A stretch of 63,445 nucleotides of DNA, filler included, from Hyphochytrium catenoides (taxonomy: Eukaryota; Protista; Hyphochytriomycota), in the NCBI GenBank assembly GCA_900088475.1. It is 8 parts of 8 records of this genome, joined end to end, with 100 filler letters (N's around TTAATTAATTAA, not from the genome) between each part and the next. Parts side by side here need not be neighbours in the genome. Positions count along the whole stretch, not along the records: positions 23,181 to 53,825 come from FLMG01002679.1; 7 more parts are not named here. One strand, written 5' to 3'. The position numbers and the translations under genes were made by a program. The notes beneath the pieces were generated by a model. It searched no databases. It was given only the letters and a program-made list of their open reading frames with translations, and was not told where the DNA came from. This document shows, piece after piece, positions 23,720-53,825 of this stretch; position 1 is the stretch's first letter, and every line of letters starts with the position of its first letter.

Positions 23720-24493
23720 TGCTTCAGAGTAGCAATGGCTGGACTATCCCAAAGGAGCTGTCGGCAAGGAGGCGGGATGCCTGACGAGACAGTGCTTCAG
23801 GTTTGATTGGCAGACGGCACATGGGCAACTCAAAGTCCAGTCCCAGATGAGAGAAAGGAGAGAGAGAGAAAGAGCGACACCAGCAGGACAAGGAGCAAGA
23901 GAGAGGCTTTACGAAGAGAAGCAAGGACATTCTTGGTGTGGCCTTGTATACCTTGGAGTCAACAGAGTGTCTCCTTCTGCATGCAGCGCCAGAAAGCGCG
24001 CAGCTCAGCCTCCTAACTCTGCACGTCTCTCCTTCAGTGCTGCGTGCCTTGTGTCTCTGTCACTGGGCTCGTTCAGGCTGAAGCTGTCTCGCCAGCAGAC
24101 GCGAGCGCAAAGAGAGAACCCTCCTAACACTCTCTCTTTCTCAGGTTTCTATTCGTATCGCTGAGGTTGTCGGTATCAGCTTTGGAGAGACAATAGGGAG
24201 AGAAGCGCGAAAGAAAAGAAGAGACACGGCGCTGGCTAAGTGGCGATAGAGAGAGAAGAATGGAATGCGAGGATGCAGATGCGGGCGCGGCCGCAATGTG
24301 GGCCTCTTCCTTCATTGGCAAGGGTTAGAAGATGCGACCGTGACTTTGGGAAAAAAGTGTAGAACTAGCAACTGCCGTACAGAAGATGGAGAAAGAGAGA
24401 CAAAGAGCGACGGGAACAGAAAGCAAGCTGGAGAGAGAGAGGAGCGAGGACGAAAGAAGAAAGAAAGCGAGAGAGCAAAGAGAGAGAGATACT

Positions 24494-24536
<43 letters not shown>

Positions 24537-25888
24537 TACAGAGAGAGAGAGAGAGGGAGGAGGAGAGAGAGAGAGAAAGAGAGAGAGAAAGACAGAGAGA
24601 GAGAGACAAGAGAGACAAGAGAGAGGCACTATGTAAACACTGTAGGGGCCTGATACTAGCTGTTCCAATCTTACTGCTATACATTATCTATAGCCTATAC
24701 AGATTACTATTCTCGGGTGGGGTATTATTACTACAGTTCCTAGTGCCTTGCGAATCTTCTTCAATTCGGACCCCAGGCGGCGTTACTTTAGGGAACTAAT
24801 GGCCAAAACCTCTAATATTCGAGGAAAGAAGAGTTTATCTTCGGGTATAAGGAGCAGAGAGATGCGGGCGAGCTGATCTTCAACACAGACTTTCTGCCCT
24901 CTTTTTTCTTTTTTGAAGCTTTGAAGACAGTGTCATCGCTTTGCGCTCTATGCTGCGCGCCGGCTAGTGAAGATTCATCATCGTAGAAGCAGGTCCGTCC
25001 CTCAGATCATCTGCGGATGTTCGATGCTCTATGAAGCCCAAAAGACGGTGGTAATGGCTGCCGGGAAATAGTAAGTACACTTCTGAGGCAATGTTGGAGG
25101 GCGTGATGCGTTTATAGCCCAGTCTCCGTTCTTGACTATGGAAACATGCTTGTATCCCGTCTTCATAGGCTCGCCCCCCGAAAAAGTGGAAGATTACATG
25201 TCTGTCCGCGGCTCATTTCCTTCTCCCCCTATTCTACTATTTCCAATTGGCGACATATCTGGCATATACCTGGTCTTCTTTAGATACGGACGCACCAAGT
25301 GCTAGGGAAATTATGCAGACACTAGTCCTTCCTCCTCTGCCGCAGTCATTGGCTTAGCGAAAGTGTTGATGCATTGCGGAGCAGGCACACAGATGATAAA
25401 ATAAAGCCTGGCTTCCGTACGTCGCTGTTTGATTTGGAATGACATATCCTGAGTAACAAGAGGAGGAGGTGTTAAGCTTTTCACACTGATGCTCAGCCGA
25501 CGCCACACCCAGAGTTATAGAGAGGTTGCTAACCCTATCTTGACTATGGCGACGCTCATAGAGAACCTAAAACCCTTTAAAATGTCGAGTTCTGAGGATA
25601 GGTGTATGTCAACGGAGCCTATGCAGTGCTGCTGTTGGTTTGGTCCCTAAGTAAGAGTACACCATTGGAAAAAGATCATCCAACGGATGAAGGTTGTGCA
25701 CCAGTGCGGCTTTTCATATGCTAGCCTCGTACCAAATTATTGCCGTGATGATCTTGTGTGACAAGTCTAGAGATTAAACGGCAGTGGCCCGACCACAACC
25801 TTCAATGCTTTCTTGGCCAAGACCGTGCTAGTAAACAGAGTTTTATATATACGCTGGGGATCGTCCTGACCGTGAACTAATTTCCTCT

Positions 25889-26555
25889 TTACTCGGTGTA
25901 GATCCCAAACATAATAGCGTTTGCCCATAAAGATAGCTGTTTAAACATGGAAGAAAGAGGTCGAGCGAGCCGACGGTCAAAGACAAGTATTGGCTCATCC
26001 AGAGGATTTTGTATATCCCTTACACTCTTATAGGACGCCGTGGCATAGTTGTCAGTCTGCGTGTCCCACAACGACCGAGATGCGACCCGCACACCTTGAT
26101 CCTTGTTCTGCCCAATCGTGACCTGAACGATGATCTTATATCGAGGGAACTTGCACTCGTCTGCAGCAACACAGGGTAGTAGGCAGTTGTGTCATTATAT
26201 TCGAGTAGAGGGTTATAGTTCAATGCCGGACAGTTACCTTTGATGCGCTTCTTGATTGTCTCAGCGATGGTAATAGCCCATTCTTTCGAATCTTCGTCGC
26301 TAAAGCTCTTACCTTGCAGCGTCTCCGTAAGCACTTCGTCCGCAATTTTACGTGCTTTTGATGGAAGGAATCTGCGCAGAGAACCAAAGGGGTAGTCAGA
26401 TCCTGCTTTGACTGCTGCGGAGAAACAGGAACGCATGGCATCACTTACTGCTCACCCTCGCCAGGGCCCATTATATACGTCGGCTCAAAGACTTCTATGA
26501 CCTTTGGAGTCATAACCTGTAGCTGCGGTACAGGCTGAGGGCTTTCAGGCGTCAT
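25889..26555 (-). CDS. TCTEX1D2: Tctex-1 family dynein light chain (TCTEX1D2/DYNLT2B-like), 4 exons
   Basis: Spliced product MTPESPQ...FEPTYIMGPGEGEQRFLPSKARKIADEVL...IKKRIKDECKFPRYKIIVQVTIGQNKDQGVRVASRSLWDTQTDNYATASYKSLSLWANAIMFGIYTE. The RYKxxVQV and SRxLWD..TD motifs define the family; the subfamily label is less certain. Confidence 0.88.
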
Positions 26556-28045: not shown

Positions 28046-28918
28046 ATGATTTCCACTTGTCCACGTTGCGGGGAGCCCTTCGGCTCTCCCGAAGAGAAAT
28101 TTTGCGGTTATTGTGGAGCTCCTCGCCGCCCGCCATCCTCAGCGTCAATGCACGGAGCCCCAGAGCAGCATCGTAGCCATGTTCCACCAGTCGCTCAGAC
28201 AGCGGTAACAAATGAACATAGTACGAGCAACTTGAGCATCCCGCGTTTCTACAATCATGATGATGGGAATCCGTCTGTACTAAGAGATAGGACCGGAGAA
28301 GCTGATAGCTATGGGTACCTTCTGCCCCTTACTGGACGGTGGAGAGCTAGCATTCTCACTGCCTGCCTTCGGCATCCACTACCAAACTGCTTAATGCCGT
28401 GGTGCCTTCCTTGCGTCACCTTCTCTCAGATCAATGCACGGCTTGGAGTCCGATCTTACCAGAGCTCTCTCATGCTATCGCTTAGCATTTGGCTTGGGAT
28501 GATGCTAGCAGCGGCGCTTGCAGGCTCATTGACTTGCGTAGATGATGGATACTATCAGTACGGCCGGTACTATACATATCGTAGGTGCAGTTATGGAGTC
28601 CTCTACGCATTCGGGTCATCCTTTGCAAGTCTGTTTGCCGTCCTGTGGCTCATGTTGCTCATTGCTCAGCGTAGTATCGTGAGGCGGCTGCTGTCCTTAC
28701 GTGGTAGTATTCTCTCGGACTGCTGCTGGTCGTTTTGGTGTGGATGCTGCTCTCTGGCGCAGTTGGGCACTCAAGTGGGCTCCTATAAGCCTGGCTCTTG
28801 CGACTTCAGAGCACCCCCGTTCAGAGAAGCTCCCGGTTATTACTATGGCGGAGTCATGGCGACCCCAACTGCGACACCTCCATCACAACCGGCGGCCGTC
28901 GCTGAATCCAGAGTGTAA
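28046..28918 (+). CDS. Zinc-ribbon + PLAC8 (Cys-rich) membrane protein, single exon
   Basis: N-terminal CPRCG..KFCGYCG. PLAC8 motifs GRWRASILTAC..PWCLPCVTFSQI..RLG and RSIVRR..LRGSILSDCCWSFWCGCCSLAQ. Two hydrophobic segments. Confidence 0.88.
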   Translation: MISTCPRCGEPFGSPEEKFCGYCGAPRRPPSSASMHGAPEQHRSHVPPVAQTAVTNEHSTSNLSIPRFYNHDDGNPSVLRDRTGEADSYGYLLPLTGRWRASILTACLRHPLPNCLMPWCLPCVTFSQINARLGVRSYQSSLMLSLSIWLGMMLAAALAGSLTCVDDGYYQYGRYYTYRRCSYGVLYAFGSSFASLFAVLWLMLLIAQRSIVRRLLSLRGSILSDCCWSFWCGCCSLAQLGTQVGSYKPGSCDFRAPPFREAPGYYYGGVMATPTATPPSQPAAVAESRV

Positions 28919-30133
28919 GCAGACTATCTGCCTGCACTATCTCTATAGTACATAGAATGGGCAATAGCAATGGAAGCCCTGGTCCGCCATTAGTCTATAT
29001 AAGAGCCTGTGCACTAGGTAGACCCCGGCTGGTTTTAAAACGCCGGTGGCGCCGGTAAGGCTTTCTCTCAAGAAGACGTACACGATAAAATCAATATAGA
29101 TAAATAGAAGTGTTGACGCGCTGGCATTTGACTCATTGCTTATAGCGGTCCCCTACGTCTATAGATGGAATCCACAGAAAAAATTGACACATTGACCGCC
29201 TTGTTTACTGTGGGGAATAGAGATAGGAGAGTGCTACAGGCTCGTCTTGGAGGTTTCCGGAAAGAGAGACCGCACAGAGATGTACCAGCAGGGCTAAGTG
29301 TTGTTGAAGCTCCTCTGGTGTGTACGCATGTATTTCAACGCATCACCTGTCTTGTTGGATTCCTTTGGATCAGCTTTGCCCGTCCAACAACTAATAATTC
29401 AGGGCTCTTCTTGATTATGCTGCCGGGCAATGAACAAGGCACCAGGTCCTGAAGCCTGTCCTTCCGCATTAATTAGTTCCCTACTGAGCTCTCATATATC
29501 TTTCCTAGCAAGTCATATCGTCTCTCGACCATGTGCACTCATCATCATAGCTTCATCATCGTGGATCCTCCTCGCCTGACAGCCAGCTCTTCATGAATGA
29601 AGAAGAGGAGAGGTGGTCCAAGGAACAACAAGGGCGTGATGAGTGATAAGAAGAAGGAAGAGAAAGAAGCTCCGTCCGTTACATACATCGTCAGGCTGAA
29701 GCGCCAGGGGTATATCTGGGGGATCCTGGGGGATGAGAGAGAGACAAAGAAGATGCGAATCTTCTGAAAACCCAAAGCTGCTGAAGAGCTCTTCGCCCCA
29801 GACAGAGCGCGGCCGCCGCAGAGATTATCGGGAAGCTGTCATCGCCTTTATGAGGGACTACGCTGAGCCTGCACGCAGATCCTCGCTGGGATATAGAAGT
29901 ATAAAGCGAGATACATCTATAAGAGAGGCATTGGCGTTCGGACAGAGAGCTGCACGAGGCGATAAAATGATATCACGGCAGTAAGGAGGTTCTACCTGAG
30001 CGCACTTCCTAGCAGCATGTAGTGCTGATGTCCACAATGAGAGAAGAGGTCATCTCGCTCTCATCAGTTCAGCCGCAGCTGTCACTCACTGTCTTCTCGT
30101 ACATCTTGGCGTCCCGTCACCGAGAGTGGCGCG

Positions 30134-33100
30134 ATGATAAGCATTATTCGTCCCAGATGCTCCAGTAGATCTATAAGTTACGTCTCCAAAGCCCGGGCCT
30201 ATCTCAGACTCCGCCCCTCTGTGGAAGCGTGCAGATTCTCCCATTCGCATTACACGTGGCACACTCCTGTTGTCCAAATACTGAAGGAGCGACGACTCCG
30301 CGGCATGCAGAGCTCCCTGCGACCACCTAAGGCGACGAAATTTAGAGCGCTAAGCGCTATGGCGCCATCAATGGCCGTACAACGGGGCCGTTATTTGCCC
30401 AAACTGTTTCACCCAGCGTCCATCGCAGGTTCGTCTTTGTGCGCCCCTGTACTGTCGTTATAGCCGTCCATTAAGCGGTCAAAATGCTTTAAGAAATGAC
30501 TTTCCGCTCTCTTCTATAAAGTGTTCGGTACCACCGGATCCCCGGAGGATGTGGCAGGCTCCCAGCTGCTGAAGAATCTTACGGAGGGCAGAGGAGCAGC
30601 CAGCAGACGCGAACCGAGACGAATATATGTCGTCAATGACTCAGTGATGGCCATTGACGACGTTGAAAGCTTCGCCAGGTGGGCTTACTATCTCCTTTCT
30701 GTCGGCAGTGCGATAAGAGGACCTTCGCTCAGGTACTTCTTGTACGCCTTGTGATCTTCTTTGCCGCCTGTAGCCTTGAGATGGTTCCTGAAGCTCCGGA
30801 TATTGCTGTTATCCTCAGTCCTGCGACAGAAGTTCCTGCCATTATTAGATGTAAGCAAGCAGAAAATGGATACTTCCCTTTGGCTTCAACTCTCTTATCA
30901 ACGCCCTTTATTAGATAAGGACATGGGGCTTCTCCTATCTGGCCTCAGATCATACTTTCTGCCATAGGCTCTATGCATTGAAGTTCTAATGCCTTGTAGA
31001 CTCGGCCTGTTCTTTCTGTAGACTCGGCCTACTCTTTCTTTAAAGGAGCCGCTTGATGTCGTGTTTGCCGCTCTGCTCGTCTACTAACACTTATCCTCTG
31101 CTTTGATGGAAGCCTGCGTTCGAAAGGAAGTGAAGATCGCAGTCGTAATGAGCAAAGGTTTCAGGGAATGTGGAGAGCGAGGAAGGCTGCTTGAGGAGGA
31201 GCTATTAGAGATCTCTCGGAACACGATCACAAGGTGTTTGCTTCTGAAAGGGTGGTCAACTCAGGCAAACTCTTTTGCAAATCTGCTACCTTGCTGACCT
31301 AAACTCTGTTGCTCTGTGCCGCCTGCTTCTGGTTGTCCCAGTATAGCCTAATAGTAACCATTGCACTGTGTTACTTTGCTGCTCAACCTGTTCCGATACT
31401 ACAGAATCCTTGGTCCAAACAGCAGTGGAGTGATGGTGCCCAGCGAGGGACTAAACATCACATGCTTTCCCTGCCTCTCTTCCCCTGGACGAGTGGGCTT
31501 TTTGTTCGAAGGGTCTGGCGGCTCTTCGCTAGTCGACTGGAGCCAAAACCAGAAGCTTGGGGTCAGTGCCTACGTCTCTGTGGGAAACAAGTGCGACATT
31601 AACTGGGGTAAGTTTGCGCAAGGAAGACAATTCGCAGATACCGAGCGCTTATTGCTCTTCTCATATATACCTTTCACACCTTTCTCCTCTCTGCATACCT
31701 GCTGTCCATGGAGTGGATTGTCCTTTGTATCTCTGGCTCTAGAGGCGAATCAGACTTAGCAAATCGCCTAACCACTCTTCGGCCTTCCTTGCCGCGTAAT
31801 CGGGTTTCTGCTTTTACCTCTACTTGTAGGCGACATTATAGGCCTCTTTCGGGATGATCCTAACACCAAGGCCCTATGCCTCTTTATTGAGTCAGTCGGG
31901 CAGAATGCCCGCAGCTTTATCTCTTCAGCTCGGGAGTTAGCCTTACGCAAGCCCATAATCGCTTTACATGCCGGGAAGACAAAGGAAGGAGCGCTTGTTT
32001 CTGCAAGGGACTCAGGCGCACCAGCTTCAGATGTCAAAGTTCTGGAAGCAGCTCTTTTGCGCTGCGGCATCCTAAGAGTGGTACGCTGAGAAGCGTTCGC
32101 AGTGACCGTAGAGAGGCGGTCTCTCAGTCACCAACTCCGCTGGTTCTTGGTAGTTGATGTTCGTTGACCTCTTGTTCGTTGACCTCTTGTACTTTCATCT
32201 TCTTCTTGGTTACGCTCACTCTCTTGTCCTACGCTCCTCCGAGATTCGCAGGGAGAGCTTACTTTAAGTGCTCCATTCTCCTACGTCTCTTCAAAACAAT
32301 CTGACGGATACCATATGCTATGCAGACTGCATTAGTGTCTAAGTGTGGCGTGTCTGTTTCCTCCTGTCTGTTAAGATAACAACCTCCTTATCACAGGGAA
32401 CCCTGAGTACACTCTACAAGGCGGCAATGACTCTTTCTCTCCAGCCAATCCCTAAGGGACCACACTTGTCAATCATCTCCAACAGTAATGCCGCAAGTGT
32501 CCTAGCCACAGATGGACTCATCTATAACGGCGGCCAGCTCGCCTCCTTCAGTGAAGAGACGAGAGATGAGCTGCAACGCCTTCTCCCTCCACACTCTAGC
32601 CCCGACAACCCTATCTCTGCTGCGCATGCAGCGACTCCTGAACACTATCAAGAGGTAAGAATGCCTAGCCATAGACATCAGGGATATCTTCTCAAGCTCC
32701 TCAGTGAGAATTCAGCCCAATACCCTTTGCCAGCTGGTACTTACCTTGTTCAAAGTTGCAGCCGAACCAATTAGATGTCTTGGAAGCTTACGAAAGCGGT
32801 GCTAATGGGTAGCTGCTTTTTGCCTCTTAGATAATAGAGACCGTTCTGAAGGACCGGCAGACAAGCGGTGCGATGATCATCCACACGCCCGAGCCAGGAC
32901 TCTCTCCTCATACGGTCGCCGAGACCATCACGTCCGTCCGAAAGCCACCAGGCAAGATATTGATGGCCTGCTTCATGGGAGGGAACGACGAAGTGGAGGA
33001 AGGTAGGGCCTGGAGAAGCTCCTTTAAGATCTTGGACTGCTTCTCGTCTCTCACTCTATTGCTGTTCGCGTATGATCTTGTGCGCGAGAGGCTCACTCTA

Positions 33101-35161
33101 AGCGTTAATATGTAGCCAAGAGGCTGTGCATTGAGAAGGGCGTTCCTACTTTCAGGTTCCCGGACACGGCGGCGAGGGTTTTTGACATCGTGCAGCAGTA
33201 TTCCTTCTCCAGGGATAGGTAAGAGGCAGCGGAGGCCGCCACGGAGCCTGCACTAACCAGGAATCCTACCTTTGTGCTTGGGCTTTAATTTGGTGCTACG
33301 TCGACCTCACATTGCCTGTCTGATTTTCTTCTCTATCTCTGTTATTTCTTTCCCCTCTCCCTGGGTGCCTCGGTGTCCCTTCATCTCTCTTCTCCTCTCT
33401 CTTTCACTTCTCACACACTCTCTCCTTTGTGTGTGTGTGTGTGTGTGTGTGTCTTTCTCACTTTTCCCTATCCATACGCCAAGATTCACGGGAATCTCTT
33501 GACTCAGGCTGTATGAGACGCCTGTGTATCCTAAGAAAACCATGGAAGTCATAGAGGAGCGCAAACGAGTAGAGGCGTTGATAAATGTCAGTGAGAAGTA
33601 TATGCGATCGTCCTCTGGGTTATCGTTGCTTATCTTTGGCTCATGCTTGACGCGTAGGCTGCGAGGGCGGAGAACAGGCACTACCTCACCCAGTCGGAGA
33701 CCTCGTTGCTTCTTAATCTCTGCGGCATAGAGTTACTTCCTTATGAATTAGCAAAAACTGAGGATTCCGCCGTTGCCCTAGCGGAGCGCTTAGGTACACC
33801 GAATGTTCTCAGTCTCAGGGACACTGTACTACCATCTTCTATCCTCACACCCACTTCTGTTCCTGCGTCTAGGCTTCCCAATAGTGATGAAGCGGTTAAC
33901 AAGAGTTGGCAGAAGAGATGCCGTCCTGGGCCTCACCGACGAGGAGTCCGTCCGCCGTGCATTCTGTCTCCTCCAGTCGACAGACGGTCGTGGCAGACCG
34001 CCATCCGAGGAAGGGAAAAAAAGAGAGCAGTTTGCGGGAGTCAAGATCCAAAAGATGGTTCATGCTGGATATGAACTCCGTTTGTCCAGCAGAGTGCATC
34101 ACGCGGTAAACTTCTTCAGTCCCGCTCCAATGAACGCCGCCTTTGCCCTGCCTTGGCCATAGATCCGGTTCAACATGTACCGTTCGTTCTTGTCCTTCTA
34201 CTAGCAAATGCTGCCCCCCTGACTGCAGTCCTGACTATTCTGTCCATCGCAGTTTGGACCTATCATTGAGTTTGGAGCAGGAACAAGATTGGGAGGAGAA
34301 TTTCAAGATGACGCGGTAGGCTTGCCTCCCTTAACCTCAACCCTAGGTGCGAAACGAGAATTGGCCCTCCGTAGCGGAGAAATATGGGTGCGAGGATAGG
34401 GCACATCAGAGAGCGTTAGGGAAGAAGGGAGAGACGAAAGAGAGAGGAGTATTCAAGGACAGAAAAGAGAAGACAGAGAGAGAGAGAAGAGATTGGGAGA
34501 GAGAGAGAATGAGAGAAAGAGAGAGGAGGAAGAGACGTAGAGCGGCATATAAAAAGGTGAAGGAAGCGGAGGGATCAGAACAAGATAATTTTGCGCACTT
34601 CCCTGATATGATAAGCCTTTCTCCCCTTTTCTTCTTCTTCTCTCCTACTGCAGCTCGTCGCATGATGGAGAAGACGCGTATCTACAAAGCTCTCAGGGCC
34701 ACATCTTACACTCTACCTTCCCTCTCCTCCGACTCTAAAGCCGCTGCTAAGCGCGAGCAGGGCCTTGAGACACTGGAGTGCGCCATGGTGCTCTTTAGCG
34801 AGATGGTGGCAGACTTTCGCTATGTTAAGGCTGTCACTGTGAACCCACTCCTCATCATCCCAGATGAATACGACCGGTTGACGCGCTTGGTTGCGCTGGA
34901 TGCCTCTGTGTCTCTCTACGACAGAGAGACAGGAGAAGATGAGTTAGTCCCCACAGCCATCCTTCCCTACCCTCAGCATCTGGTGCGCAGAGTCTTTCTC
35001 CGTGACAAGGAGTTCACGGTTCGGCCGGTCAGACCGGAGGACGAGGAGCGATTGAGAGAGTTCCATCAAGACCTGAGTGAGGACACAGTGAGGCTCAGGT
35101 ACTTCCAGGTAAGGCCACCACAGTGTCAGATTCACTTTTTGCGAAGCGTCTTCGTCTTCTA

Positions 35162-35202
<41 letters not shown>

Positions 35203-35784
35203 ATACACACAGACACACGCACACACTTGTAAGGATGCAATTGCCTCTAACGATACTCTCACCTTCCTTCTCTTAACTCCTACCCTTCATTTACCTTATA
35301 TGGAGAACTGCTATAGCTGCGTTTTCCTTCCCTTCTCGACTGTCTATCGACATAAGACCCTCTCGCTTATATAGCCATTCCGCAGAATTTCCGTCTTTCG
35401 CAAAGGGTTTCCCATGAGCGTCTCTCTCGGTCCTGTTTTATCGACTATTCGCAAGAGATGGCTCTACTCGTCCTGGAGAAAGGCACACGGCGAGTCCTAG
35501 GAGTGGGCAAGCTTTTCAAGCACTCCGAGGCTGTGTCCGACATCCCCACAGCTGAGTACGCGATCCTCGTCCATGACAGCGCCCAGCAGCAAGGGATAGG
35601 CAGTCTCCTCATGGAGCAGCTCATAGAAGTGGGTGCACGCGACTGGGGACTGAGGAAGATTGTGGCTGACGTCCTTCCGACAAATGCGGGAATGAAAGCT
35701 CTTTGTAAGAAATTTGGCTTCTCCAGCCACTATGATCAAGAAGAGGGAGTGCTGAAGATGGAGTTATCTCTTTCTCCCTCTTGA
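30134..35784 (+). CDS. Pat/PatZ/YfiQ-type bifunctional acetate-CoA-ligase-like/GNAT protein lysine acetyltransferase, 15 exons, ~1010 aa
   Basis: Exons 30134-30428, 30522-30678, 30774-30850, 31113-31233, 31405-31607, 31830-32080, 32397-32654, 32831-33002, 33116-33218, 33508-33586, 33658-33793, 33873-34105, 34253-34346, 34654-35108, 35386-35784 sum to 3033 nt in frame. Motifs: LFHPASIAVFG, SKGFRECG, RILGPNS, SVGNKCDI, DDPNTKA..IES, FGPIIEFGAG, LPPLTSTLARRMM, NPLL..LDA, PYP, RPVRPED, RYF, FIDY..EMAL, AEYAILVHD.AQQQGIG, N.GMKALCKKFGF. The start could alternatively be 30305 or 30359. Confidence 0.92.
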
Positions 35785-36222
35785 AATTGAAGAAGAAAGA
35801 AAGCAAGGCACAAGATATTGCCAAGACCTTGACTTCCTCTCAAATTGAGATTTTGATTCCCTGAAGCCCTAATAAGTGTTGAAGAGATAACTGAGTCCGT
35901 TTTTTAGTCAGAGCTCTTGCCTAGCTCGGTTAGATGGGCCAACCCTGGTTCAGGAGGGTAGCGAAAGAAAAGTATCTGTAAGGATCAGGCCGCGCAATGA
36001 CCTTCTAAGCGATAGGTAACTATGTAACGAATGCTGGCCACCTGCTACCTATCAAGACTTAGGCATCAGCGTCAGAGGTGCGCAGGAGACAGCGCGCAAG
36101 TCGAGCGGTCAGAGTGGTGGCCATTAGCTAGGGGACAACCCACAGGTTATTGCACCCAGGGAACAGGAAGGCTGCAGAGTAGTTGAGGAGCATCAGCGGA
36201 TCAGAAAGCTTTCAGGAGCTCC

Positions 36223-41088: not shown

Positions 41089-41478
41089 CCAAAAGACAGT
41101 GGGAAACTGGAGGAAAAGTGAGGGTTGAACTCTCTTTGTAAGCTTTGTACTGTATGAAGGCTGTGAGAGACGAGGGCGATGTCTGCCCTGGACGACGAGG
41201 CTTGTGCCTGACGCCTGCCTCTCTGAGAGCTCAGGCCTCACTCGCATTGCTCTCCAGCTGCACACTCATCGTCAACTCAGCGCTGGCCTGACAACCGAAG
41301 GAAAGCCAAAGGAAAGGGAAGTCATCGATGGTCAACTGACAATTGCTGCGCCTCAGAGAGCATCCAGAGATACGCAGAAGGTCCTGAAACGATAAAAGGA
41401 GGCCAGCCTCAGCTGTTCTTGTCAAGGAAGGAAGCATCAGAGGCGTCCTCGAGCACAGAGGAAGCAAACAGACTTACA

Positions 41479-41638
41479 ATGGCAGATGCGAAGGCTCGTG
41501 AGGTGAAGGTGGTGCTGCTGGGAGACACCGGAGTAGGGAAGTCAAGCCTGGTCTTGCGCTTTGTGACGAACAACTTCAAGCCTTACTCCGAGAGTACCAT
41601 TGGGTGGGTGCAATGGACAGAGGAATCAGCCGCAGTGC

Positions 41639-41692
<54 letters not shown>

Positions 41693-42890
41693 TCTCGCTC
41701 TCTCTCTTTTTCTTTCTCGTTGTCTCATTTCCTACTCAGTGTTGTTTCATTTCTCCTCTTCAGAAGTCTTTCCGCCCCTGGATTTCCGCTTGGAGGATTC
41801 TGCTGATCTCTCTTTCTCGTCATCATCTGTTCTTCTCTCTCTTTCTCTCGCTCTCTCTCTTGATCAGTGCCTCTTTCATGTCCAAGATGATAATGGTGGA
41901 CGAGGTGCCAATCAAGTACCAGATCTGGGATACGGCGGGTCAGGAAAAGGTAAGCCAATCTTCGCACGCCTTTGCACTTCCTTCTGCCCTTTTGAGGCTG
42001 ACCTCTCCTCGCTGCCTGCAGTACCATAGTCTAGCTCCCATGTACTATAGGGGAGCTGCCGCAGCCATCGTCGTCTATGACATCACGAGGAAGGTAAGCA
42101 GAAGAATTCCACCTCTAAGAGGTCCTCTCTGCCGTCCTTTTCCTCGTCATGGGCGGCGCTTTATCTAAGCTTCTTTCCCTCTCTGGTCTCAAATTCTTTC
42201 CACGTCTCCCCCTAGCAATCCTTGGCAACGCTAAAGAACTGGGTGAAGGAGCTCAAGCAGCTGGGACCAGATAGCATCGTCATTGCTATCGCTGGAAATA
42301 AGAGTGACCTGGAGGACAAGCGGGTAAGGCCACTGTTATCCCTTTTCTCGGCTCTGCGTGCGGCCGGAATCGCTTCAGCTTCTAATATCTTTGATGGTGA
42401 TATCTTCCTTTATGTAGGAGGTTCCGTCTGAGGTGGCCAAGGCGTACGCTGATGAGATTGGAGCGCTCTTTGTGGAGACATCGGCCAAGGAGGACAAGAA
42501 TGTTTCTGAGCTCTTCATCAACATCAGTAAGGACACCGATGACCACTTAGATAACGCTCTGGTTCTTTGTCATGTCTCTCGGTTGCTGCTGTGCATCTAA
42601 TTCTGTCTGTCATAACCTGTCTTTGCATGTATGCGTCTGCTCTTTTCCCTCTAAGACTGTGGGCTCTTAAGCTCTGTGTCGTGATCACAAAAGGCCATGA
42701 CTTCGTCGTCAGCGTAGACTTTCTCACTTCTCACATTTAAATGCCTGTTCTAAAGCTCGTTTTCCTCGCTTGTACGCTTGGCCTCTGGACTTCAGGCAAA
42801 AGGCTTCCTCAAGCCACTGCAGAGAGAACCTCGCTGCCACTAGGTGACACTGAGCACTATGGAACCAGTCGGCGATCCAATTGTTGTTGA
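41479..42890 (+). CDS. RAB22: Rab GTPase, Rab22/Rab31 subgroup of the Rab5 family, 6 exons
   Basis: GDTGVGKS, STIG|ASF, WDTAGQEK, SLAPMYYRGA, LKNWVKELKQLGP..IVIAIAGNKSDL, ETSAK and C-terminal CC prenylation site. Confidence 0.9.
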
Positions 42891-43153: not shown

Positions 43154-46100
43154 CTAACGTCTACGATCACCGCCCCGATACCCTCCGCGTGACCCGTCAC
43201 GCCGCCCACGATATCCTCCGTCCAGTCTTGACCCTCGCTGCAGCCGAATGCCATCCCGACCGCTGGTACGAACTGCAGACAGGAAGGGAAGTGTCAGAGG
43301 GGCTTAACAGAAGGCGGAAGGGGTTACGCTCAAGGAGAGAGAAGGGGTATGTACTCGGATTGCACAGCCAAACAGTCATGTTGAAGGTCTTGAATACCTT
43401 GGTTGGACCACCGCGGCGGTCTGTCACCATCTCTTCGGTCCCTGCCGCCCCAGTTTCTGTCAGGACGGTCGGTCCATCCGCGTCTCTCTCCTCTTCCACC
43501 TTGCCAGTCATCCTTGTAGGCGTAACCTCCAGATCGGGAGTCCAGTAGCCTCTCATTGCTTTCGACAAACATGGACGCCTGTCATTTAGCAGAGAAAGCG
43601 TGAGCACACTCCCTTAATCATTGACTCACAGAAGCAAACCCAAAGGATAGGCGTCTGATAGAAGGGGAGGACAAAGGCCGAAGAGCTCCAAGAATAGCAT
43701 GCAGGTACGGCTCTGTCCAAATTCTGCTGAGTAAATGTGTATGCAACGTGGGTCATTCAGGTAGAAGCGTCTTCAATGAAGGTTCAGGCTCATTATATCA
43801 GATATATAGCCATCATTATGACCCGCAAGAGCACAGAAGAGGGAGATGGCAGCACGAAGGATGTGGAGAAGAGAAACAAGGCGCTACCTTTTCGGCGAAC
43901 TGCAGGGCCAGCGCCTGCAGTTGAGTTGGCTCGACGCGCTGGAATACGACGCTCTCGGTGGTCTGATAAAAATAAAACGAAAGCATTAGTGACATCTGCT
44001 TCTTCCCTATTCCCGATATTTGAGAGCTTCCTCTTACCTGGTCCCATGCTGCATGGACTTCCTCGTTGATCATCATCTTGCTGAAGACGCTGTGCACCTT
44101 GTTCGGAGGTAGCTCAAACATTTTGCAGAGCTGGGGTAGGCTCATCGAGTCGTAGTAGGCTNNNNNNNNNNNNNNNNNNNNNNNNNNNNNNNNNNNNNNN
44201 NNNNNNNNNNNNNNNNNNNNNNNNTCTTTCTACCGCGCCTTCTCCCGGGATCAAGTTCCAGACTTTCAGCCCGAGAATCAGCTCACAGCAGCGCTTCCAG
44301 TTTCCTGCCGCAAGAGCCTTGGCACCTGCAACGACATGGTCGCGAGTGTTTTCTGGAGGACCATTGAACACCTAACAAAGGCAAGGCTTATTGAGCACAT
44401 TCAAGAAGGGAGCAAAAGGGTCTAAAGACGAACACATTCAGCGGATCATAGACAGAGGAATGTAATGCGCTCGCGGCTGGGAAATGAAGAGGAAGACAGA
44501 GCCTAGTCAGCCCGAAAAGCCTGCAATGTCCCACCTGCCGGTCGCTAATCTCCAGGTACCGCCGGAAGGATTTTGAGATGAGCCTTCTCCTATAATCTGT
44601 AGGGTGCTGAGCCATATTTGGCACCTCAAGAAGCATAGCAGAGGTCAGATGGACGCACTCGAGCAACTCCAGGTTGATGTGCATGTGGAAAGGAATCTGA
44701 CGTCTCTTCTCAGCCTTCTCTTGTTCAGGATTTTTGTCGCTGAACCGTGCAGACTGCATTCCTTGAGCGAGAAGCTCCTTGGTTCTTGCGCCGGAGCAAA
44801 GCTCTGAGAGACAAGAATGGGCTTCATAGATTAGTCCACTCCTGAATGCGCAAAGCCCAAGCTGTGCCATCGTTCTGTTGAAAAGGATCTGTGTGGGCAC
44901 GTCTGCATAGGTGATCGACTCCTGCAAGTGGCTCATAAGAAGGAGGTCTCTGGCCTGGTAAAAGCGGTCGTGGATGCTGTGGTGGAAGATGTGGCAGAGC
45001 ATAGCCCTTGTCTTAGCCCTGTCATCGCCGTGCTTGTATACGAAAGAGCACAAGTCTCTCATCAGCGCCTCAGTGTCTGTGAGCTCTGCCTCCACAGAGG
45101 GAGAGCCTGTCCAGCTGCCTGGGTGGAGGACGCTAGCGTTCCTCTCCGAGGGCTTCACAGACTTGGCATTCTCCCCTCTGCATGCAGGATGAAGATCTTG
45201 GGTCCGTCCGTACTTATTTCTAAATTGCCGGGCTTTCTGCAGGGCTCTAGCAATGGAGTCGTGCTTATAGTGCGTGTACTCGATGCGAAGAGTGGCAACC
45301 TGAGCCGCTGTGGTCTTATCGTTGATCCTGACATAGTACTTCTGAGCACCGTCTGCCAGGTCTAGAAGAAGATCTTCATCGTAGAGCCTGTCTACATAGT
45401 CGCTAGAGTGAGGGTCGATCTGCTGAAGACTCTTTGTGTACTCGTCGGCAAGTCTCTCGAGGAAGGAGAACACACTGCCAGCAACGCGGATAACTCCTTC
45501 TGCCTCTCCAGCCGGAGGAGCACTGGTCTCCTCTTCTGGCGTGTCCTTTAGCTCTCCTCTGCCTGCTCTAAGGATCTCAGCATGATCTTCTGCTGAAAGC
45601 GCTGCGAGTGTGATCTTGGGGTTGTCTTCTAGGACAGTGAGTACGCGCTGAATGTCACCGTGGGCCAATCGCCATTGGTCCGCTGTCATTAGGGCGTCAA
45701 TCTTAGACTGAGTGTCAAATAGCTGGGCGGAGACGAGATGCATTCTGGCTGGAATCTCCTTGAGAGGGCCAAACTTCATAGATAGGGTCGCGAGCTTCCT
45801 AAGAAGCTTGAGATGCTCATTGATGTCAGTTCCTCTTTTGCCCCGTTGTGCCACAGTCTCCTTCAGCTTGCGGTCAAAGGCTTCAGGAGTGAGAGATTCT
45901 TGCTGCTGTTCCTCCTGCTTCATGCGCGACTCGTAGCTCAGCTTCCGAACCTTCTTCTCTGATGGGCCCTTCTCCTTCGGCTTCTTCTTCTCTGCCTTGG
46001 TTTCTGCTTCGACAGTGGTGCTCTTCAACCACCGGGCGCGACCCTTTGGCATGCTCTCGTAGTCCTCATCCTCAGATTCAGAGGATGAAGATGACTCACC

Positions 46101-47235
46101 GCCAAAGAAGTCGGAGTCATCAGACTCAACAGACTGTAAGAGATAGGTAGAGAGAAGGATAGGGGGCAGGCGGTGGTGTTAAAGCAGGTGGAGGAGAGGC
46201 TCGGAGAGTGGGATAGAAGAAACATATATGCGCTTTCTATAGCCAATGCTCCACTATATAAAAAGGCATTGGCCTCAAACAGGCGCTGAAGCTCTTGCAA
46301 GTTTGCGAAGGTGAGCCAGGTGGGGAAGCTACCGACACACCACTAGATACTTGCGGACCACGAGTTTGTCCCACTCCTTCCCTTACCTTCTTCCTTGAGG
46401 GCTTGCCTTCATCTTCGGACTCCTCCTCTGAGGACGCCTCATCAGAAGAAGAAGAGGACGAGGAAGACTCGTCAGAATCACTCTCATCGCTTTCACTTGA
46501 GTCTTCACTCTCTTCGTCACTGGCATACGCATCGGGGTTCTATGTGTCCGAGGGGTCAAGTTAGCCTGGACGAATGGAGCAATGGCTTGGAAATATTACA
46601 ACGCACCTTCCTATACTCAGAAATCTGTTTCTCATAGCTGGCGTTGTGCTTCTTCAGCTTGACCTTCATACGGTTAAAGGATCTCATATTCTCCTTGTTC
46701 ATTTTCTTTTGAGTTTCCTTGTCCTTCAAGGTCCCGTTGACGAGATCTTCAAGCTTGGCAAGGAGCTGAATGTAGGTCTTAGGGAGGCCATGGTTCTCGA
46801 TGACAGCCTTTGCCTTCTCAAGCTGCTTGGTCAGGTCATCAAACTCTAATAGTGCATGTGCTACCGTTAGCCCAAGGCGTAATCCAGGATAACCTGAAAT
46901 AGTTGTCCAAACCTGTGAGGATGCTGCTCCAGTCATTGATCTTCATGGAGTTTCTAATCTTCGCAATAGACTTCTGCACGCCTTCGAAGGCACGCTCTTT
47001 GGCTGATCGCACCACGCGGCGCTCATCTTCGGAGGAGGATTCGGACTCAATCTCCCACTTGCGACCTTCCTTCACCTGTAATAGCAACACATGTAGGTAA
47101 GAATCACCGCTTCGTCAGCCTGACTCCATCCTGTGGGCATAAATAACAGACCTGGGTGGTCTCTACGAACTCATCACTGCCGGATTCAGATTCAGATTCG
47201 GACTCGGACGAGCCCGCCCAGAATCTAGAAGCCAT
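43154..47235 (-). CDS. EIF3C: Eukaryotic translation initiation factor 3 subunit C, multi-exon (63-N gap at 44162-44224)
   Basis: MASRFWAGSSESE start; RRVVRSAKERA; MKINDWSSI; RARWLK; RGKRGTD; RAMLCHIFHH..DRFYQARDLLLMSHLQE; QILFNRTMAQLGLCAFR; PFHMHINLELLE; FNGPPENTRDHVV; PCI-end SKMMINEEVHAAWDQ. Confidence 0.96.
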
Positions 47236-52252: not shown

Positions 52253-53825
52253 TTGAAGGAGTTCGCAGACCACAACGAGTACGATAAGCAAATGCTACTG
52301 CGAGCATTAAAGATGTCCTTGAAGGGACCAGATAGGATGGTACTCGCAGACCTAGTTCCTGCAGACAAGAAAACCGACTACGAGATACTAAGAGAGGAGC
52401 TGAAGGCACAATTCGAGCCCTACTACCGAAGCAGAAGAACTGCTACCGCGGACCGAGCTAGAGCAGACGCTGCTCGCATCCAGCCACCTCTGAGCAAAGA
52501 CGGCCAGGGATATACAAAGCAAGACAGCTTAAAATGGGACCAGTATGTCAGAGACAAGCAGGTAGCTCTGATTGAGTACAAGAACAAATACGAGGCCATG
52601 AATGGGCTCCTGGACTGGCAAACCCTGACAGAAGCTTTGACTGAGGACCTTAACGAGGCGGATCGAAACGCACTTTCGTCGTATATCGAACGGGTGGCGG
52701 ACCTAAACACTTACAATGAGCTAGCTGCGGCCATTAAGAGGCTGGCCAGTCGGGCACGAAACCCTAAGCGCGGAAGAGAAGGAAAGAATATCGGGGATCG
52801 TCACCAAGCCTTTCTGTCGTCAGTGCAAAGGCTATCACCCAATTGGACGACATTTTCGTTCGCGTGAATTAAGAGAGGACTCGCCCGCTCCGCTAAGACA
52901 CGATCGCGGGAGAAGAGTGCAGAAGACCCTAACCAAGGCCGACGGCCATTATGGACCTGCGGACAAACGTGGCGATCTCAGCCAAATCGAGTGCTTCAAT
53001 TGTCGCGAGGTTGGACACATGCAAGCCCAATGCCCGCGCCTAAAGGGAGATGATAAGAAGAACAAGAAACAACAATACACCGACTGGCGCAAGAAGCGCG
53101 TCAGCTTTAGCTTTACAAAGTATCACGACGAGGACGAGAGCAGCGTTGATGGTTCCAAATCCAGTGATTATGAAGATCCAGACGAGGATGCGGCCAAACG
53201 CAGACGTACCTGTAAGAAAAGACACGCTGAGAACGGACCACAGCAAACGGCCACAGGGACTCTGGTCAACGGAGAACTAGATGGGTTCAAAGTGCTCATT
53301 GAACTTGACACCGCGGCAAATGTGTCACTGGTAAGCAAGAGATGGCTAGAGCGACAGCCGGCGGAACTGCAGAAGCAATGGCGCGAGGGTAGCGTCGCCC
53401 TCTACGACGCTCAAGGCCAACCATCAATGAAGACAAGCGGTTCCCTTATCGCCACACTGTGTGTGGGCAAGCGAAATACTGAGACATAGATTCCTCGTGA
53501 TGAAGGGCTTACAGCCAGATGTGCTCTTAGGAACCGACGCATTTCAGGTGGTAGCAATGACGATCATGCTAGGCCAAGGCGACAGTGAGCCAGGAACAAC
53601 TGTACGACTCACAACTGCAGAAGCCTACACAACTGCAGAAGTAAAGACGCCTTCCTTCGATCAGCAGCTAGAAAGGAAAATCAGCCATCTCGCCGAGGGG
53701 ACGGAGAAGGAAGAATGGAGGACGGTACTCACCTCCTTTCGAGACGCCTTCTGGATAGAGGGAGACGAGCTAGGCTTCTTTAAACAGAAGCCTTTCGACG
53801 TACCATACGACACCAGCCTCCCGGC
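52253..53825 (+). mobile_element. Degenerate Ty3/Gypsy LTR retrotransposon (gag + protease + start of the pre-RT region), truncated at contig end
   Basis: CCHC zinc knuckle CFNCREVGHMQAQC; aspartic protease IELDTAANVSLVS and DVLLGTD; LTSFRDAF..ELG pre-RT motif. The three ORFs (52253, 52917, 53461) lie in different frames, indicating frameshifts. Confidence 0.85.

Follow-up and report, generated by a model that had tools for sequence, protein, structure and literature searches.

Type I GNATs have been treated as bacterial regulators of acetyl-CoA metabolism (PMC8556138, PMC12184503). Their defining trait is a synthetase-like domain that is catalytically dead, the catalytic histidine being absent (PMC8556138). 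Escherichia coli PatZ (also YfiQ or Pka) is a tetramer with allosteric binding of acetyl-CoA (R26, R81), in which the pocket for AMP-forming acyl-CoA synthetases (Acs) is built by both domains (PMC12184503); the mechanism of Salmonella enterica Pat (SePat; PMC3195501) is taken here from its summary in PMC8556138. In eukaryotic organelles, the acetyltransferase side of the Acs-sirtuin switch is unclear, and mammals have no known dedicated acetyltransferase of the Pat type for mitochondrial Acs (PMC11255334, PMC9433433). Here, we analyze a 63,445-nt stretch of DNA from Hyphochytrium catenoides (assembly GCA_900088475.1; hereafter the window). Its part FLMG01002679.1 (positions 23,181-53,825) carries, at 30134-35784 on the plus strand, a Pat-type gene that is an intact nuclear eukaryotic gene of bacterial origin. 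The reading that we favor, with reasonable rather than firm confidence, is that its product is a type I GNAT whose synthetase module is catalytically dead and regulatory, i.e., a lysine acetyltransferase of the Pat/PatZ kind and of bacterial origin, likely with Acs as its substrate and possibly organellar. No description of a eukaryotic Pat-type enzyme was found in the literature searched, which is not proof of absence, and annotated eukaryotic proteins of this architecture may exist elsewhere. What appears to be new here is a eukaryotic type I GNAT that is encoded by an intron-bearing gene, is extended at its N terminus and has synthetase residues that degenerated independently.

Gene structure and full-length homology

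We rebuilt the gene model independently from the three forward frames, reading the stretch 29800-36100. The rebuilt model has 15 exons and 14 introns, all of them GT...AG, with lengths of 71-316 nt and phases, in order, of 1,2,1,2,1,0,0,1,2,0,1,0,1,0. The coding sequence of 3033 nt is uninterrupted, encodes 1010 aa and ends with a TGA stop codon at 35782-35784. The exons, with the support for each, are as follows:

30134..30428, plus strand: exon 1, from the first ATG of the open frame; basic extension (30134-30388) and start of the CoA-binding domain (…LFHPASIA)
30522..30678, plus strand: exon 2, CoA-binding domain (VFGTTGS…); junction gap-free against the bacterial alignment
30774..30850, plus strand: exon 3, CoA-binding domain; model and bacterial alignment
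31113..31233, plus strand: exon 4, CoA-binding domain; model and bacterial alignment
31405..31607, plus strand: exon 5, start of the flavodoxin-like Succ_CoA_lig domain; PF13607 E 3e-5, TIGR02717 E 8e-13
31830..32080, plus strand: exon 6, Succ_CoA_lig, with the D345 codon (32009-32011) at the His-alpha place; PF13607 E 7e-18
32397..32654, plus strand: exon 7, Ligase_CoA_2; PF19045 E 0.006, TIGR02717 E 6e-15
32831..33002, plus strand: exon 8, Ligase_CoA_2; model, NCBIfam search and bacterial alignment
33116..33218, plus strand: exon 9, end of the alpha-like part; model and bacterial alignment
33508..33586, plus strand: exon 10, LYETP linker; model and bacterial alignment
33658..33793, plus strand: exon 11, start of ATP-grasp_5; model and bacterial alignment
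33873..34105, plus strand: exon 12, ATP-grasp_5, with the altered His-beta loop at 33893-33919; PF13549 E 0.013
34253..34346, plus strand: exon 13, ATP-grasp_5 (FGPIIEFGAG…LPPLTSTL); 94 nt, of equal length in the second eukaryotic sequence, L001 (below)
34654..35108, plus strand: exon 14, end of ATP-grasp_5, linker and start of GNAT (RPVRPEDEE…RLRYFQ); PF13549 E 2e-5, PatZ residues 649-756
35386..35784, plus strand: exon 15, GNAT catalytic domain and stop; PF00583 E 4e-12, PatZ residues 761-881 E 3e-14

The 1010-aa protein needs splicing, because every retained intron would break the frame: 12 of the 14 bring in an in-frame stop codon, and the remaining two (10 and 11) cause a frameshift. In a 73-row alignment that includes 70 full-length bacterial homologs, every one of the 14 exon junctions is found within a gap-free stretch; each junction is therefore validated independently by homology. 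The G+C content is 0.54 in the exons and 0.58 at their third positions, compared with 0.44-0.53 in the introns.

Pfam searches with single exons returned, in the expected order, Succ_CoA_lig (exons 5-6), Ligase_CoA_2 (exon 7), ATP-grasp_5 (exons 12 and 14) and Acetyltransf_1 (exon 15), and in NCBIfam the exons matched the acetate-CoA ligase alpha model and the mycobacterial Pat model. With the spliced protein as the query, BLASTP gave single high-scoring segment pairs (HSPs) that span residues ~83-1008 at 38-40% identity to bacterial proteins of ~900 aa. These proteins, in which CoA-binding, Succ_CoA_lig, Ligase_CoA_2 and ATP-grasp_5 parts like those of an ADP-forming acetyl-CoA synthetase (ACD) precede a GNAT domain, are referred to below as ACD-GNATs; they include the best phmmer representative (P0006, E 1e-169). 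E. coli PatZ (L097:7954-10614) was matched at 29% identity over residues 3-881 of its 886, with an E value of 3e-100. The short exons 2-4 gave no Pfam match to CoA_binding_2, and this domain is placed by its collinearity with P0006 and PatZ. In PDB searches with exons 14 and 15, the top matches were the two PatZ structures (9it0 and 9isq). By these scores, the full-length match is far beyond chance, and the exon domains, the single HSP to PatZ and the collinear CoA_binding_2 region make up the domain architecture of a type I GNAT.

An initial annotation of this DNA had described 15 exons, 14 phase-consistent GT-AG introns and a product of ~1010 aa, all of which the independent rebuild reproduced. 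The domain order it gave (CoA-binding, ligase-CoA, ATP-grasp-like, GNAT) agrees with the exon domains and the single HSPs, the CoA-binding part through collinearity, and the peptides LPPLTSTLARRMMEKTRIY, LYETP and LSQRVSHERLSRSCFIDYSQEMAL, which it described as tracking bacterial members, do follow the bacterial proteins in our alignments. It also called the protein bacterial in type, in keeping with the end-to-end BLASTP identity of 38-40% and with the placement among bacteria in the trees described below. The likeness that it drew to Pat and PatZ stands for the architecture, which is complete, but not for closeness of kinship: the enterobacterial proteins, at 29%, are not the nearest relatives, and the ACD-GNATs, at 38-40%, are nearer.

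The N-terminal ~85 residues form an extension that has no bacterial counterpart, the bacterial alignments beginning at residue ~83. It contains 17 Lys or Arg residues versus 2 Asp or Glu residues, is rich in Ser and Thr, and has no hydrophobic signal core. This composition, together with the predicted start codon, suggests a candidate presequence of the mitochondrial type, and the protein is possibly imported into an organelle, most likely the mitochondrion.

The synthetase-like module and the GNAT domain

ACDs, such as ACD1 of Ca. Korarchaeum (4xyl) and those of Entamoeba and Giardia, share with the Hyphochytrium protein homologous folds, in the same order, for the CoA-binding, flavodoxin-like, ligase-CoA and ATP-grasp parts. 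They work via phospho-histidine intermediates, as in the ACD1 structures 4xyl and 4xym, which PMC12184503 cites. The GNAT domain of the Hyphochytrium protein is absent from ACDs, which depend on both histidines. Neither of the two marks of an ACD, the phospho-histidine motif ASHTG and the His-Lys loop THK[ST]DVGG, is found in the Hyphochytrium protein. At the His-alpha place there is an aspartate, D345, in the sequence SARDSGA, which aligns opposite AASHTGS of ckcACD1 (4xyl). The His-beta loop of the ATP-grasp part, where the His of THK[TS]DVGG corresponds to PatZ H531, carries a 5-residue deletion and reads KRLTRVGRRD in Hyphochytrium and KRAVRHGKRD in L001; the exact placement of the gap is ambiguous, and the motif is gone. 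With Asp at His-alpha and a deletion in the His-beta loop, synthetase chemistry would be lost. To judge from these residues, the synthetase part cannot work as a synthetase and, since both histidines are missing, the protein would not be an ACD in function. An inactive synthetase-like domain is what characterizes a type I GNAT, and D345 and the disrupted His-beta loop correspond to it.

In E. coli PatZ, the His-alpha place is deleted and H531 is kept, whereas the Hyphochytrium protein has an aspartate there and has lost the His-beta loop. On this comparison, the loss of the histidines is independent of that in the enterobacterial enzymes, and it amounts to a natural experiment in the conversion of a synthetase into a sensor domain. 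The acetyl-CoA-binding arginines of PatZ also differ: R26 corresponds to D108 and R81 to E170 of the Hyphochytrium protein, and the nearest bacterial relatives have Ser or Thr at both places. As far as these alignments go, the two arginines are specific to the enterobacterial branch.

The bacterial ACD-GNATs depart from the Hyphochytrium gene in having neither introns nor the N-terminal extension, and in keeping both catalytic motifs: the ASHTG histidine, the first of the two and the one missing from E. coli PatZ, is present in 70/70 full-length relatives, as is the THK[TS]DVGG loop, with its H, K and final G invariant. Many so-called type I GNAT proteins may thus still combine a functional synthetase with a GNAT in one chain, against the textbook description.

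The GNAT domain is better preserved in its key residues. In a HMMER alignment to 9it0, the catalytic glutamate of PatZ, E809, aligns with E935 in TAEYAILV (codon 35554-35556), and this column is Glu in 65/70 bacterial relatives. GNAT motif A, which binds acetyl-CoA, has the form Arg/Gln-x-x-Gly-x-Gly/Ala (PMC8556138); the form Q-x-x-G-x-G is present as Q945-Q-Q-G948-I-G950 (QQQGIG, 35584-35601), opposite KGLGLG of PatZ. The full-length bacterial family and the Hyphochytrium protein both retain the surroundings of the PatZ gating motif and the stretch (R/K)LSQR-x-(S/A)HERL-x-R-x-CFIDY. The top NCBIfam match of exon 15 is the arsinothricin acetyltransferase family, barely ahead of mycobacterial Pat. 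Overall, these residues lead us to predict that acetyltransferase chemistry has been kept.

Relatives, proposed function and alternatives

A GTDB scan made with an 8-row alignment yielded 80 loci (L017-L096) with 34-46% identity in exon 14, distributed over Acidobacteriota, Chloroflexota, Cyanobacteriota, Myxococcota, Verrucomicrobiota, Planctomycetota, Parachlamydiaceae and others. The products of these loci and P0006 are the ACD-GNATs that stand nearest to the Hyphochytrium protein, with which they have in common the motifs LPPL(N/T)(T/S)TLARRMME, LYETP, RPIRPEDE and HERLxRxCFIDY; no characterized member of this subfamily was found in the literature searched. The nearest named representatives are proteins of metagenome-assembled genomes, e.g., from Hydrogenedentota, which NCBI names 'bifunctional acetate--CoA ligase family protein/GNAT', and the reported content of the Atlas clusters that surround the nearest bacterial relative is 76-100% bacterial. 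Two maximum-likelihood trees united the Hyphochytrium protein and L001 in a clade with SH-aLRT support of 100%; its stem, 2.3-3.9 substitutions per site long, arises in a polytomy of bacterial groups, with PatZ as a distant outgroup. These comparisons mark the gene as bacterial in type. Descent from a cyanobacterial (plastid) or chlamydial donor is possible but finds no support in the two trees.

L001 was reached through exon 14, with which 1.84 billion representatives were searched exhaustively by HMMER. Among the best 150 of the 487 matches, one was outstanding (P0001; 57% identity, 159 bits), and the next, at 84 bits or less, were of bacterial type. P0001 is located on L001, a 2.1-kb, eukaryote-like Logan contig from SRR32051696, on which exons 12-15 have their counterparts, separated by GT-AG introns whose three positions and phases are identical to those in the Hyphochytrium gene. 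The spliced partial protein of L001 is 59% identical to the Hyphochytrium protein, and the exons are 57-71% identical in DNA, whereas the similarity of introns 13 and 14 does not exceed that of a shuffled control, a level that intron 12 does not clearly surpass. Because the exons are conserved while the introns are not clearly above the control, the comparison indicates purifying selection on the gene in a lineage of two species. A 13-residue insertion is common to both sequences and generally absent from the bacterial matches that span this stretch; both extra segments of the Hyphochytrium protein occur, among the same best 150 of 487 matches, in P0001 only. Further searches for eukaryotic relatives returned the L001 GNAT open reading frame (ORF) only with exon 15, no match with exon 6, and loci of bacterial type only (36-42%) in a metagenome scan. 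As far as these searches show, two related organisms carry the Pat-type gene.

Since L001 shares intron positions and 59% protein identity with it, the gene was already present when two rather distant species diverged. The initial annotation had spoken of an ancient transfer; a transfer older than this split agrees with it, but 'ancient' holds only in this relative sense, the trees fixing neither the donor nor the date. A conserved, intron-rich eukaryotic copy means that a nuclear genome can take over a bacterial regulator.

The mechanism that we propose follows by analogy with the PatZ structures (PMC12184503) and SePat. The C-terminal GNAT domain would be the catalyst, with its general-base glutamate and acetyl-CoA pyrophosphate loop. 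The ~700-residue part that resembles an NDP-forming acyl-CoA synthetase would be an oligomerizing regulatory module that senses acetyl-CoA and other ligands of the energy state, opens the substrate channel of the GNAT and helps form the substrate pocket with it. The most likely substrates would be AMP-forming acyl-CoA synthetases, acetylated at the A10 lysine, which would place acetyl-CoA synthesis under feedback control. We thus infer acetyltransferase activity, a regulatory role for the dead synthetase part, Acs as the target and reversal by a sirtuin from likeness to described enzymes, and the localization from the N-terminal extension. E. coli PatZ and S. enterica Pat resemble the Hyphochytrium protein in domain order and length class, and PatZ, collinear with it over residues 3-881, shares the catalytic glutamate, the acetyl-CoA loop and the absence of the catalytic His-alpha. 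The differences are the modest identity to PatZ, the eukaryotic host, the 14 introns and the N-terminal extension.

Should the protein enter an organelle and have Acs as its target, its logic would be that of the mammalian AceCS2-SIRT3 switch, off by acetylation and on by sirtuin. A Pat-Acs-sirtuin switch in a protist is a reasonable hypothesis; neither an Acs nor a sirtuin gene is among the long ORFs of the window, to which this search was confined. The more specific proposal, of a eukaryote-domesticated, mitochondrial, acetyl-CoA-sensing Pat that turns AMP-forming acyl-CoA synthetases off, with a mitochondrial sirtuin as its opponent, and whose synthetase part was inactivated independently of PatZ, we regard as tentative and, taken as a whole, rather unlikely. 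Were it true, the 'missing' mitochondrial Acs acetyltransferase, which has not been found in animals, would have a natural example in this protein. If targeted to an organelle, the protein would offer a natural system in which the acetylation of eukaryotic metabolic enzymes by an enzyme, rather than by chemical reaction, could readily be studied.

Several points weigh against the favored reading of a Pat/PatZ-kind lysine acetyltransferase. The gene model and its start codon are predictions from DNA; if translation began at an internal Met (M76 or M80), there would be no presequence. Which substrates a GNAT acts on is not evident from its sequence, the long stem below the eukaryotic clade could mean a changed function, and the acetyl-CoA-binding arginines of PatZ are not conserved, so that allosteric binding of acetyl-CoA is only putative. 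The last two points would also fit a GNAT reused for small-molecule or N-terminal acetylation, or for other protein substrates, with no Acs switch and the N-terminal part serving as a scaffold. Such reuse is also favored by insertions particular to this lineage, which lie immediately before the GNAT domain, in the linker and the end of ATP-grasp_5, and by the arsinothricin acetyltransferase match of exon 15. We nevertheless consider it doubtful, if far from negligible, given that the gating-motif region and the (R/K)LSQR-x-(S/A)HERL-x-R-x-CFIDY stretch are retained and that PatZ forms its Acs pocket from both domains (PMC12184503), so that retention of the whole 700-residue module points to the same mode of action.

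Other alternatives turn on the synthetase part itself. A working bifunctional enzyme, acting as an ADP-forming acetate-CoA ligase besides or instead of acetylating proteins, would account for the retention of the entire, collinear synthetase-like region and would match both the NCBI name of the nearest bacterial relatives and the two histidines that they keep; the aspartate at His-alpha and the loop that is 5 residues shorter in both eukaryotic sequences make it quite improbable. Loss of the same catalytic residues, in a gene known from DNA alone, might instead mark a silent or decaying relic of gene transfer. This we hold to be very improbable: the frame runs intact through all 15 exons, whose splice sites are canonical, the GNAT has its catalytic residues, third positions of the exons are richer in G+C than the introns, and the protein is conserved in the L001 ortholog while the introns compared are at, or not clearly above, the level of the shuffled control.

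Genomic setting

The contig that carries the Pat-type gene also carries genes for PLAC8, NAC, a Ras/Rab GTPase, eIF3c and Tctex-1 and a retroelement zinc knuckle, and eukaryotic genes flank the Pat-type gene on both sides. The features that we annotated are:

26020-26433, minus strand: Tctex-1 dynein light chain fragment
28046-28918, plus strand: PLAC8-family gene, a single 290-aa ORF with an N-terminal zinc ribbon, directly upstream of the Pat-type gene
39308...: NAC-domain gene
41419-42168, plus strand: Rab5-like GTPase, interrupted by an intron full of (CT)n
43816-44145: PCI-domain piece, beside the eIF3c gene
44388-46936, minus strand: eIF3c, a 554-aa ORF and an upstream eIF-3c_N block (46556-46936), i.e., at least two coding blocks
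52253-53825, plus strand: retrotransposon ORFs that run into the end of the contig piece

These neighbors bear on the one remaining alternative, that the gene is bacterial contamination or an assembly artefact. The nearest full-length proteins in all databases are bacterial, as contamination would have it. The 14 introns of the spliceosomal type and the eukaryotic genes on both flanks of the one contig (PLAC8, NAC, Rab, eIF3c, Tctex-1) nonetheless leave this alternative with almost no probability. The base composition is likewise even across the contig piece, and three DNA runs of the same organism contain 40-78% of the words sampled from the region. The initial annotation had argued against contamination from the introns and the eukaryotic neighbors, and both grounds hold, PLAC8 and NAC being confirmed among the neighbors. 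For the eIF3c ORF, the best named matches are from oomycetes, Ectocarpus, Aureococcus and diatoms, at only 50-53%; by this gene, the host sequence looks stramenopile-affiliated, or at least of the stramenopile-alveolate-Rhizaria (SAR) group, and the protein collection searched contains nothing closely related to it. An apicomplexan or chromerid affiliation, considered at first, was dropped.

The Tctex-1, Rab5-like GTPase and NAC genes together show a gene-dense, intron-rich eukaryotic region. Within the retrotransposon, the ORF at 52917-53489 has a CCHC zinc knuckle and is gag-like, and the next ORF resembles the start of a protease/pol. Long (TG)n and (GA)n/(CT)n microsatellites occur in introns and intergenic DNA (33425-33452, 34470-34540, 35165-35200, 41640-41700 and 24400-24680). 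Such microsatellites seem typical of the lineage; the related contig L001 has (CT)n at its start and a CT-rich repeat of the CTT/CCT type at its end.

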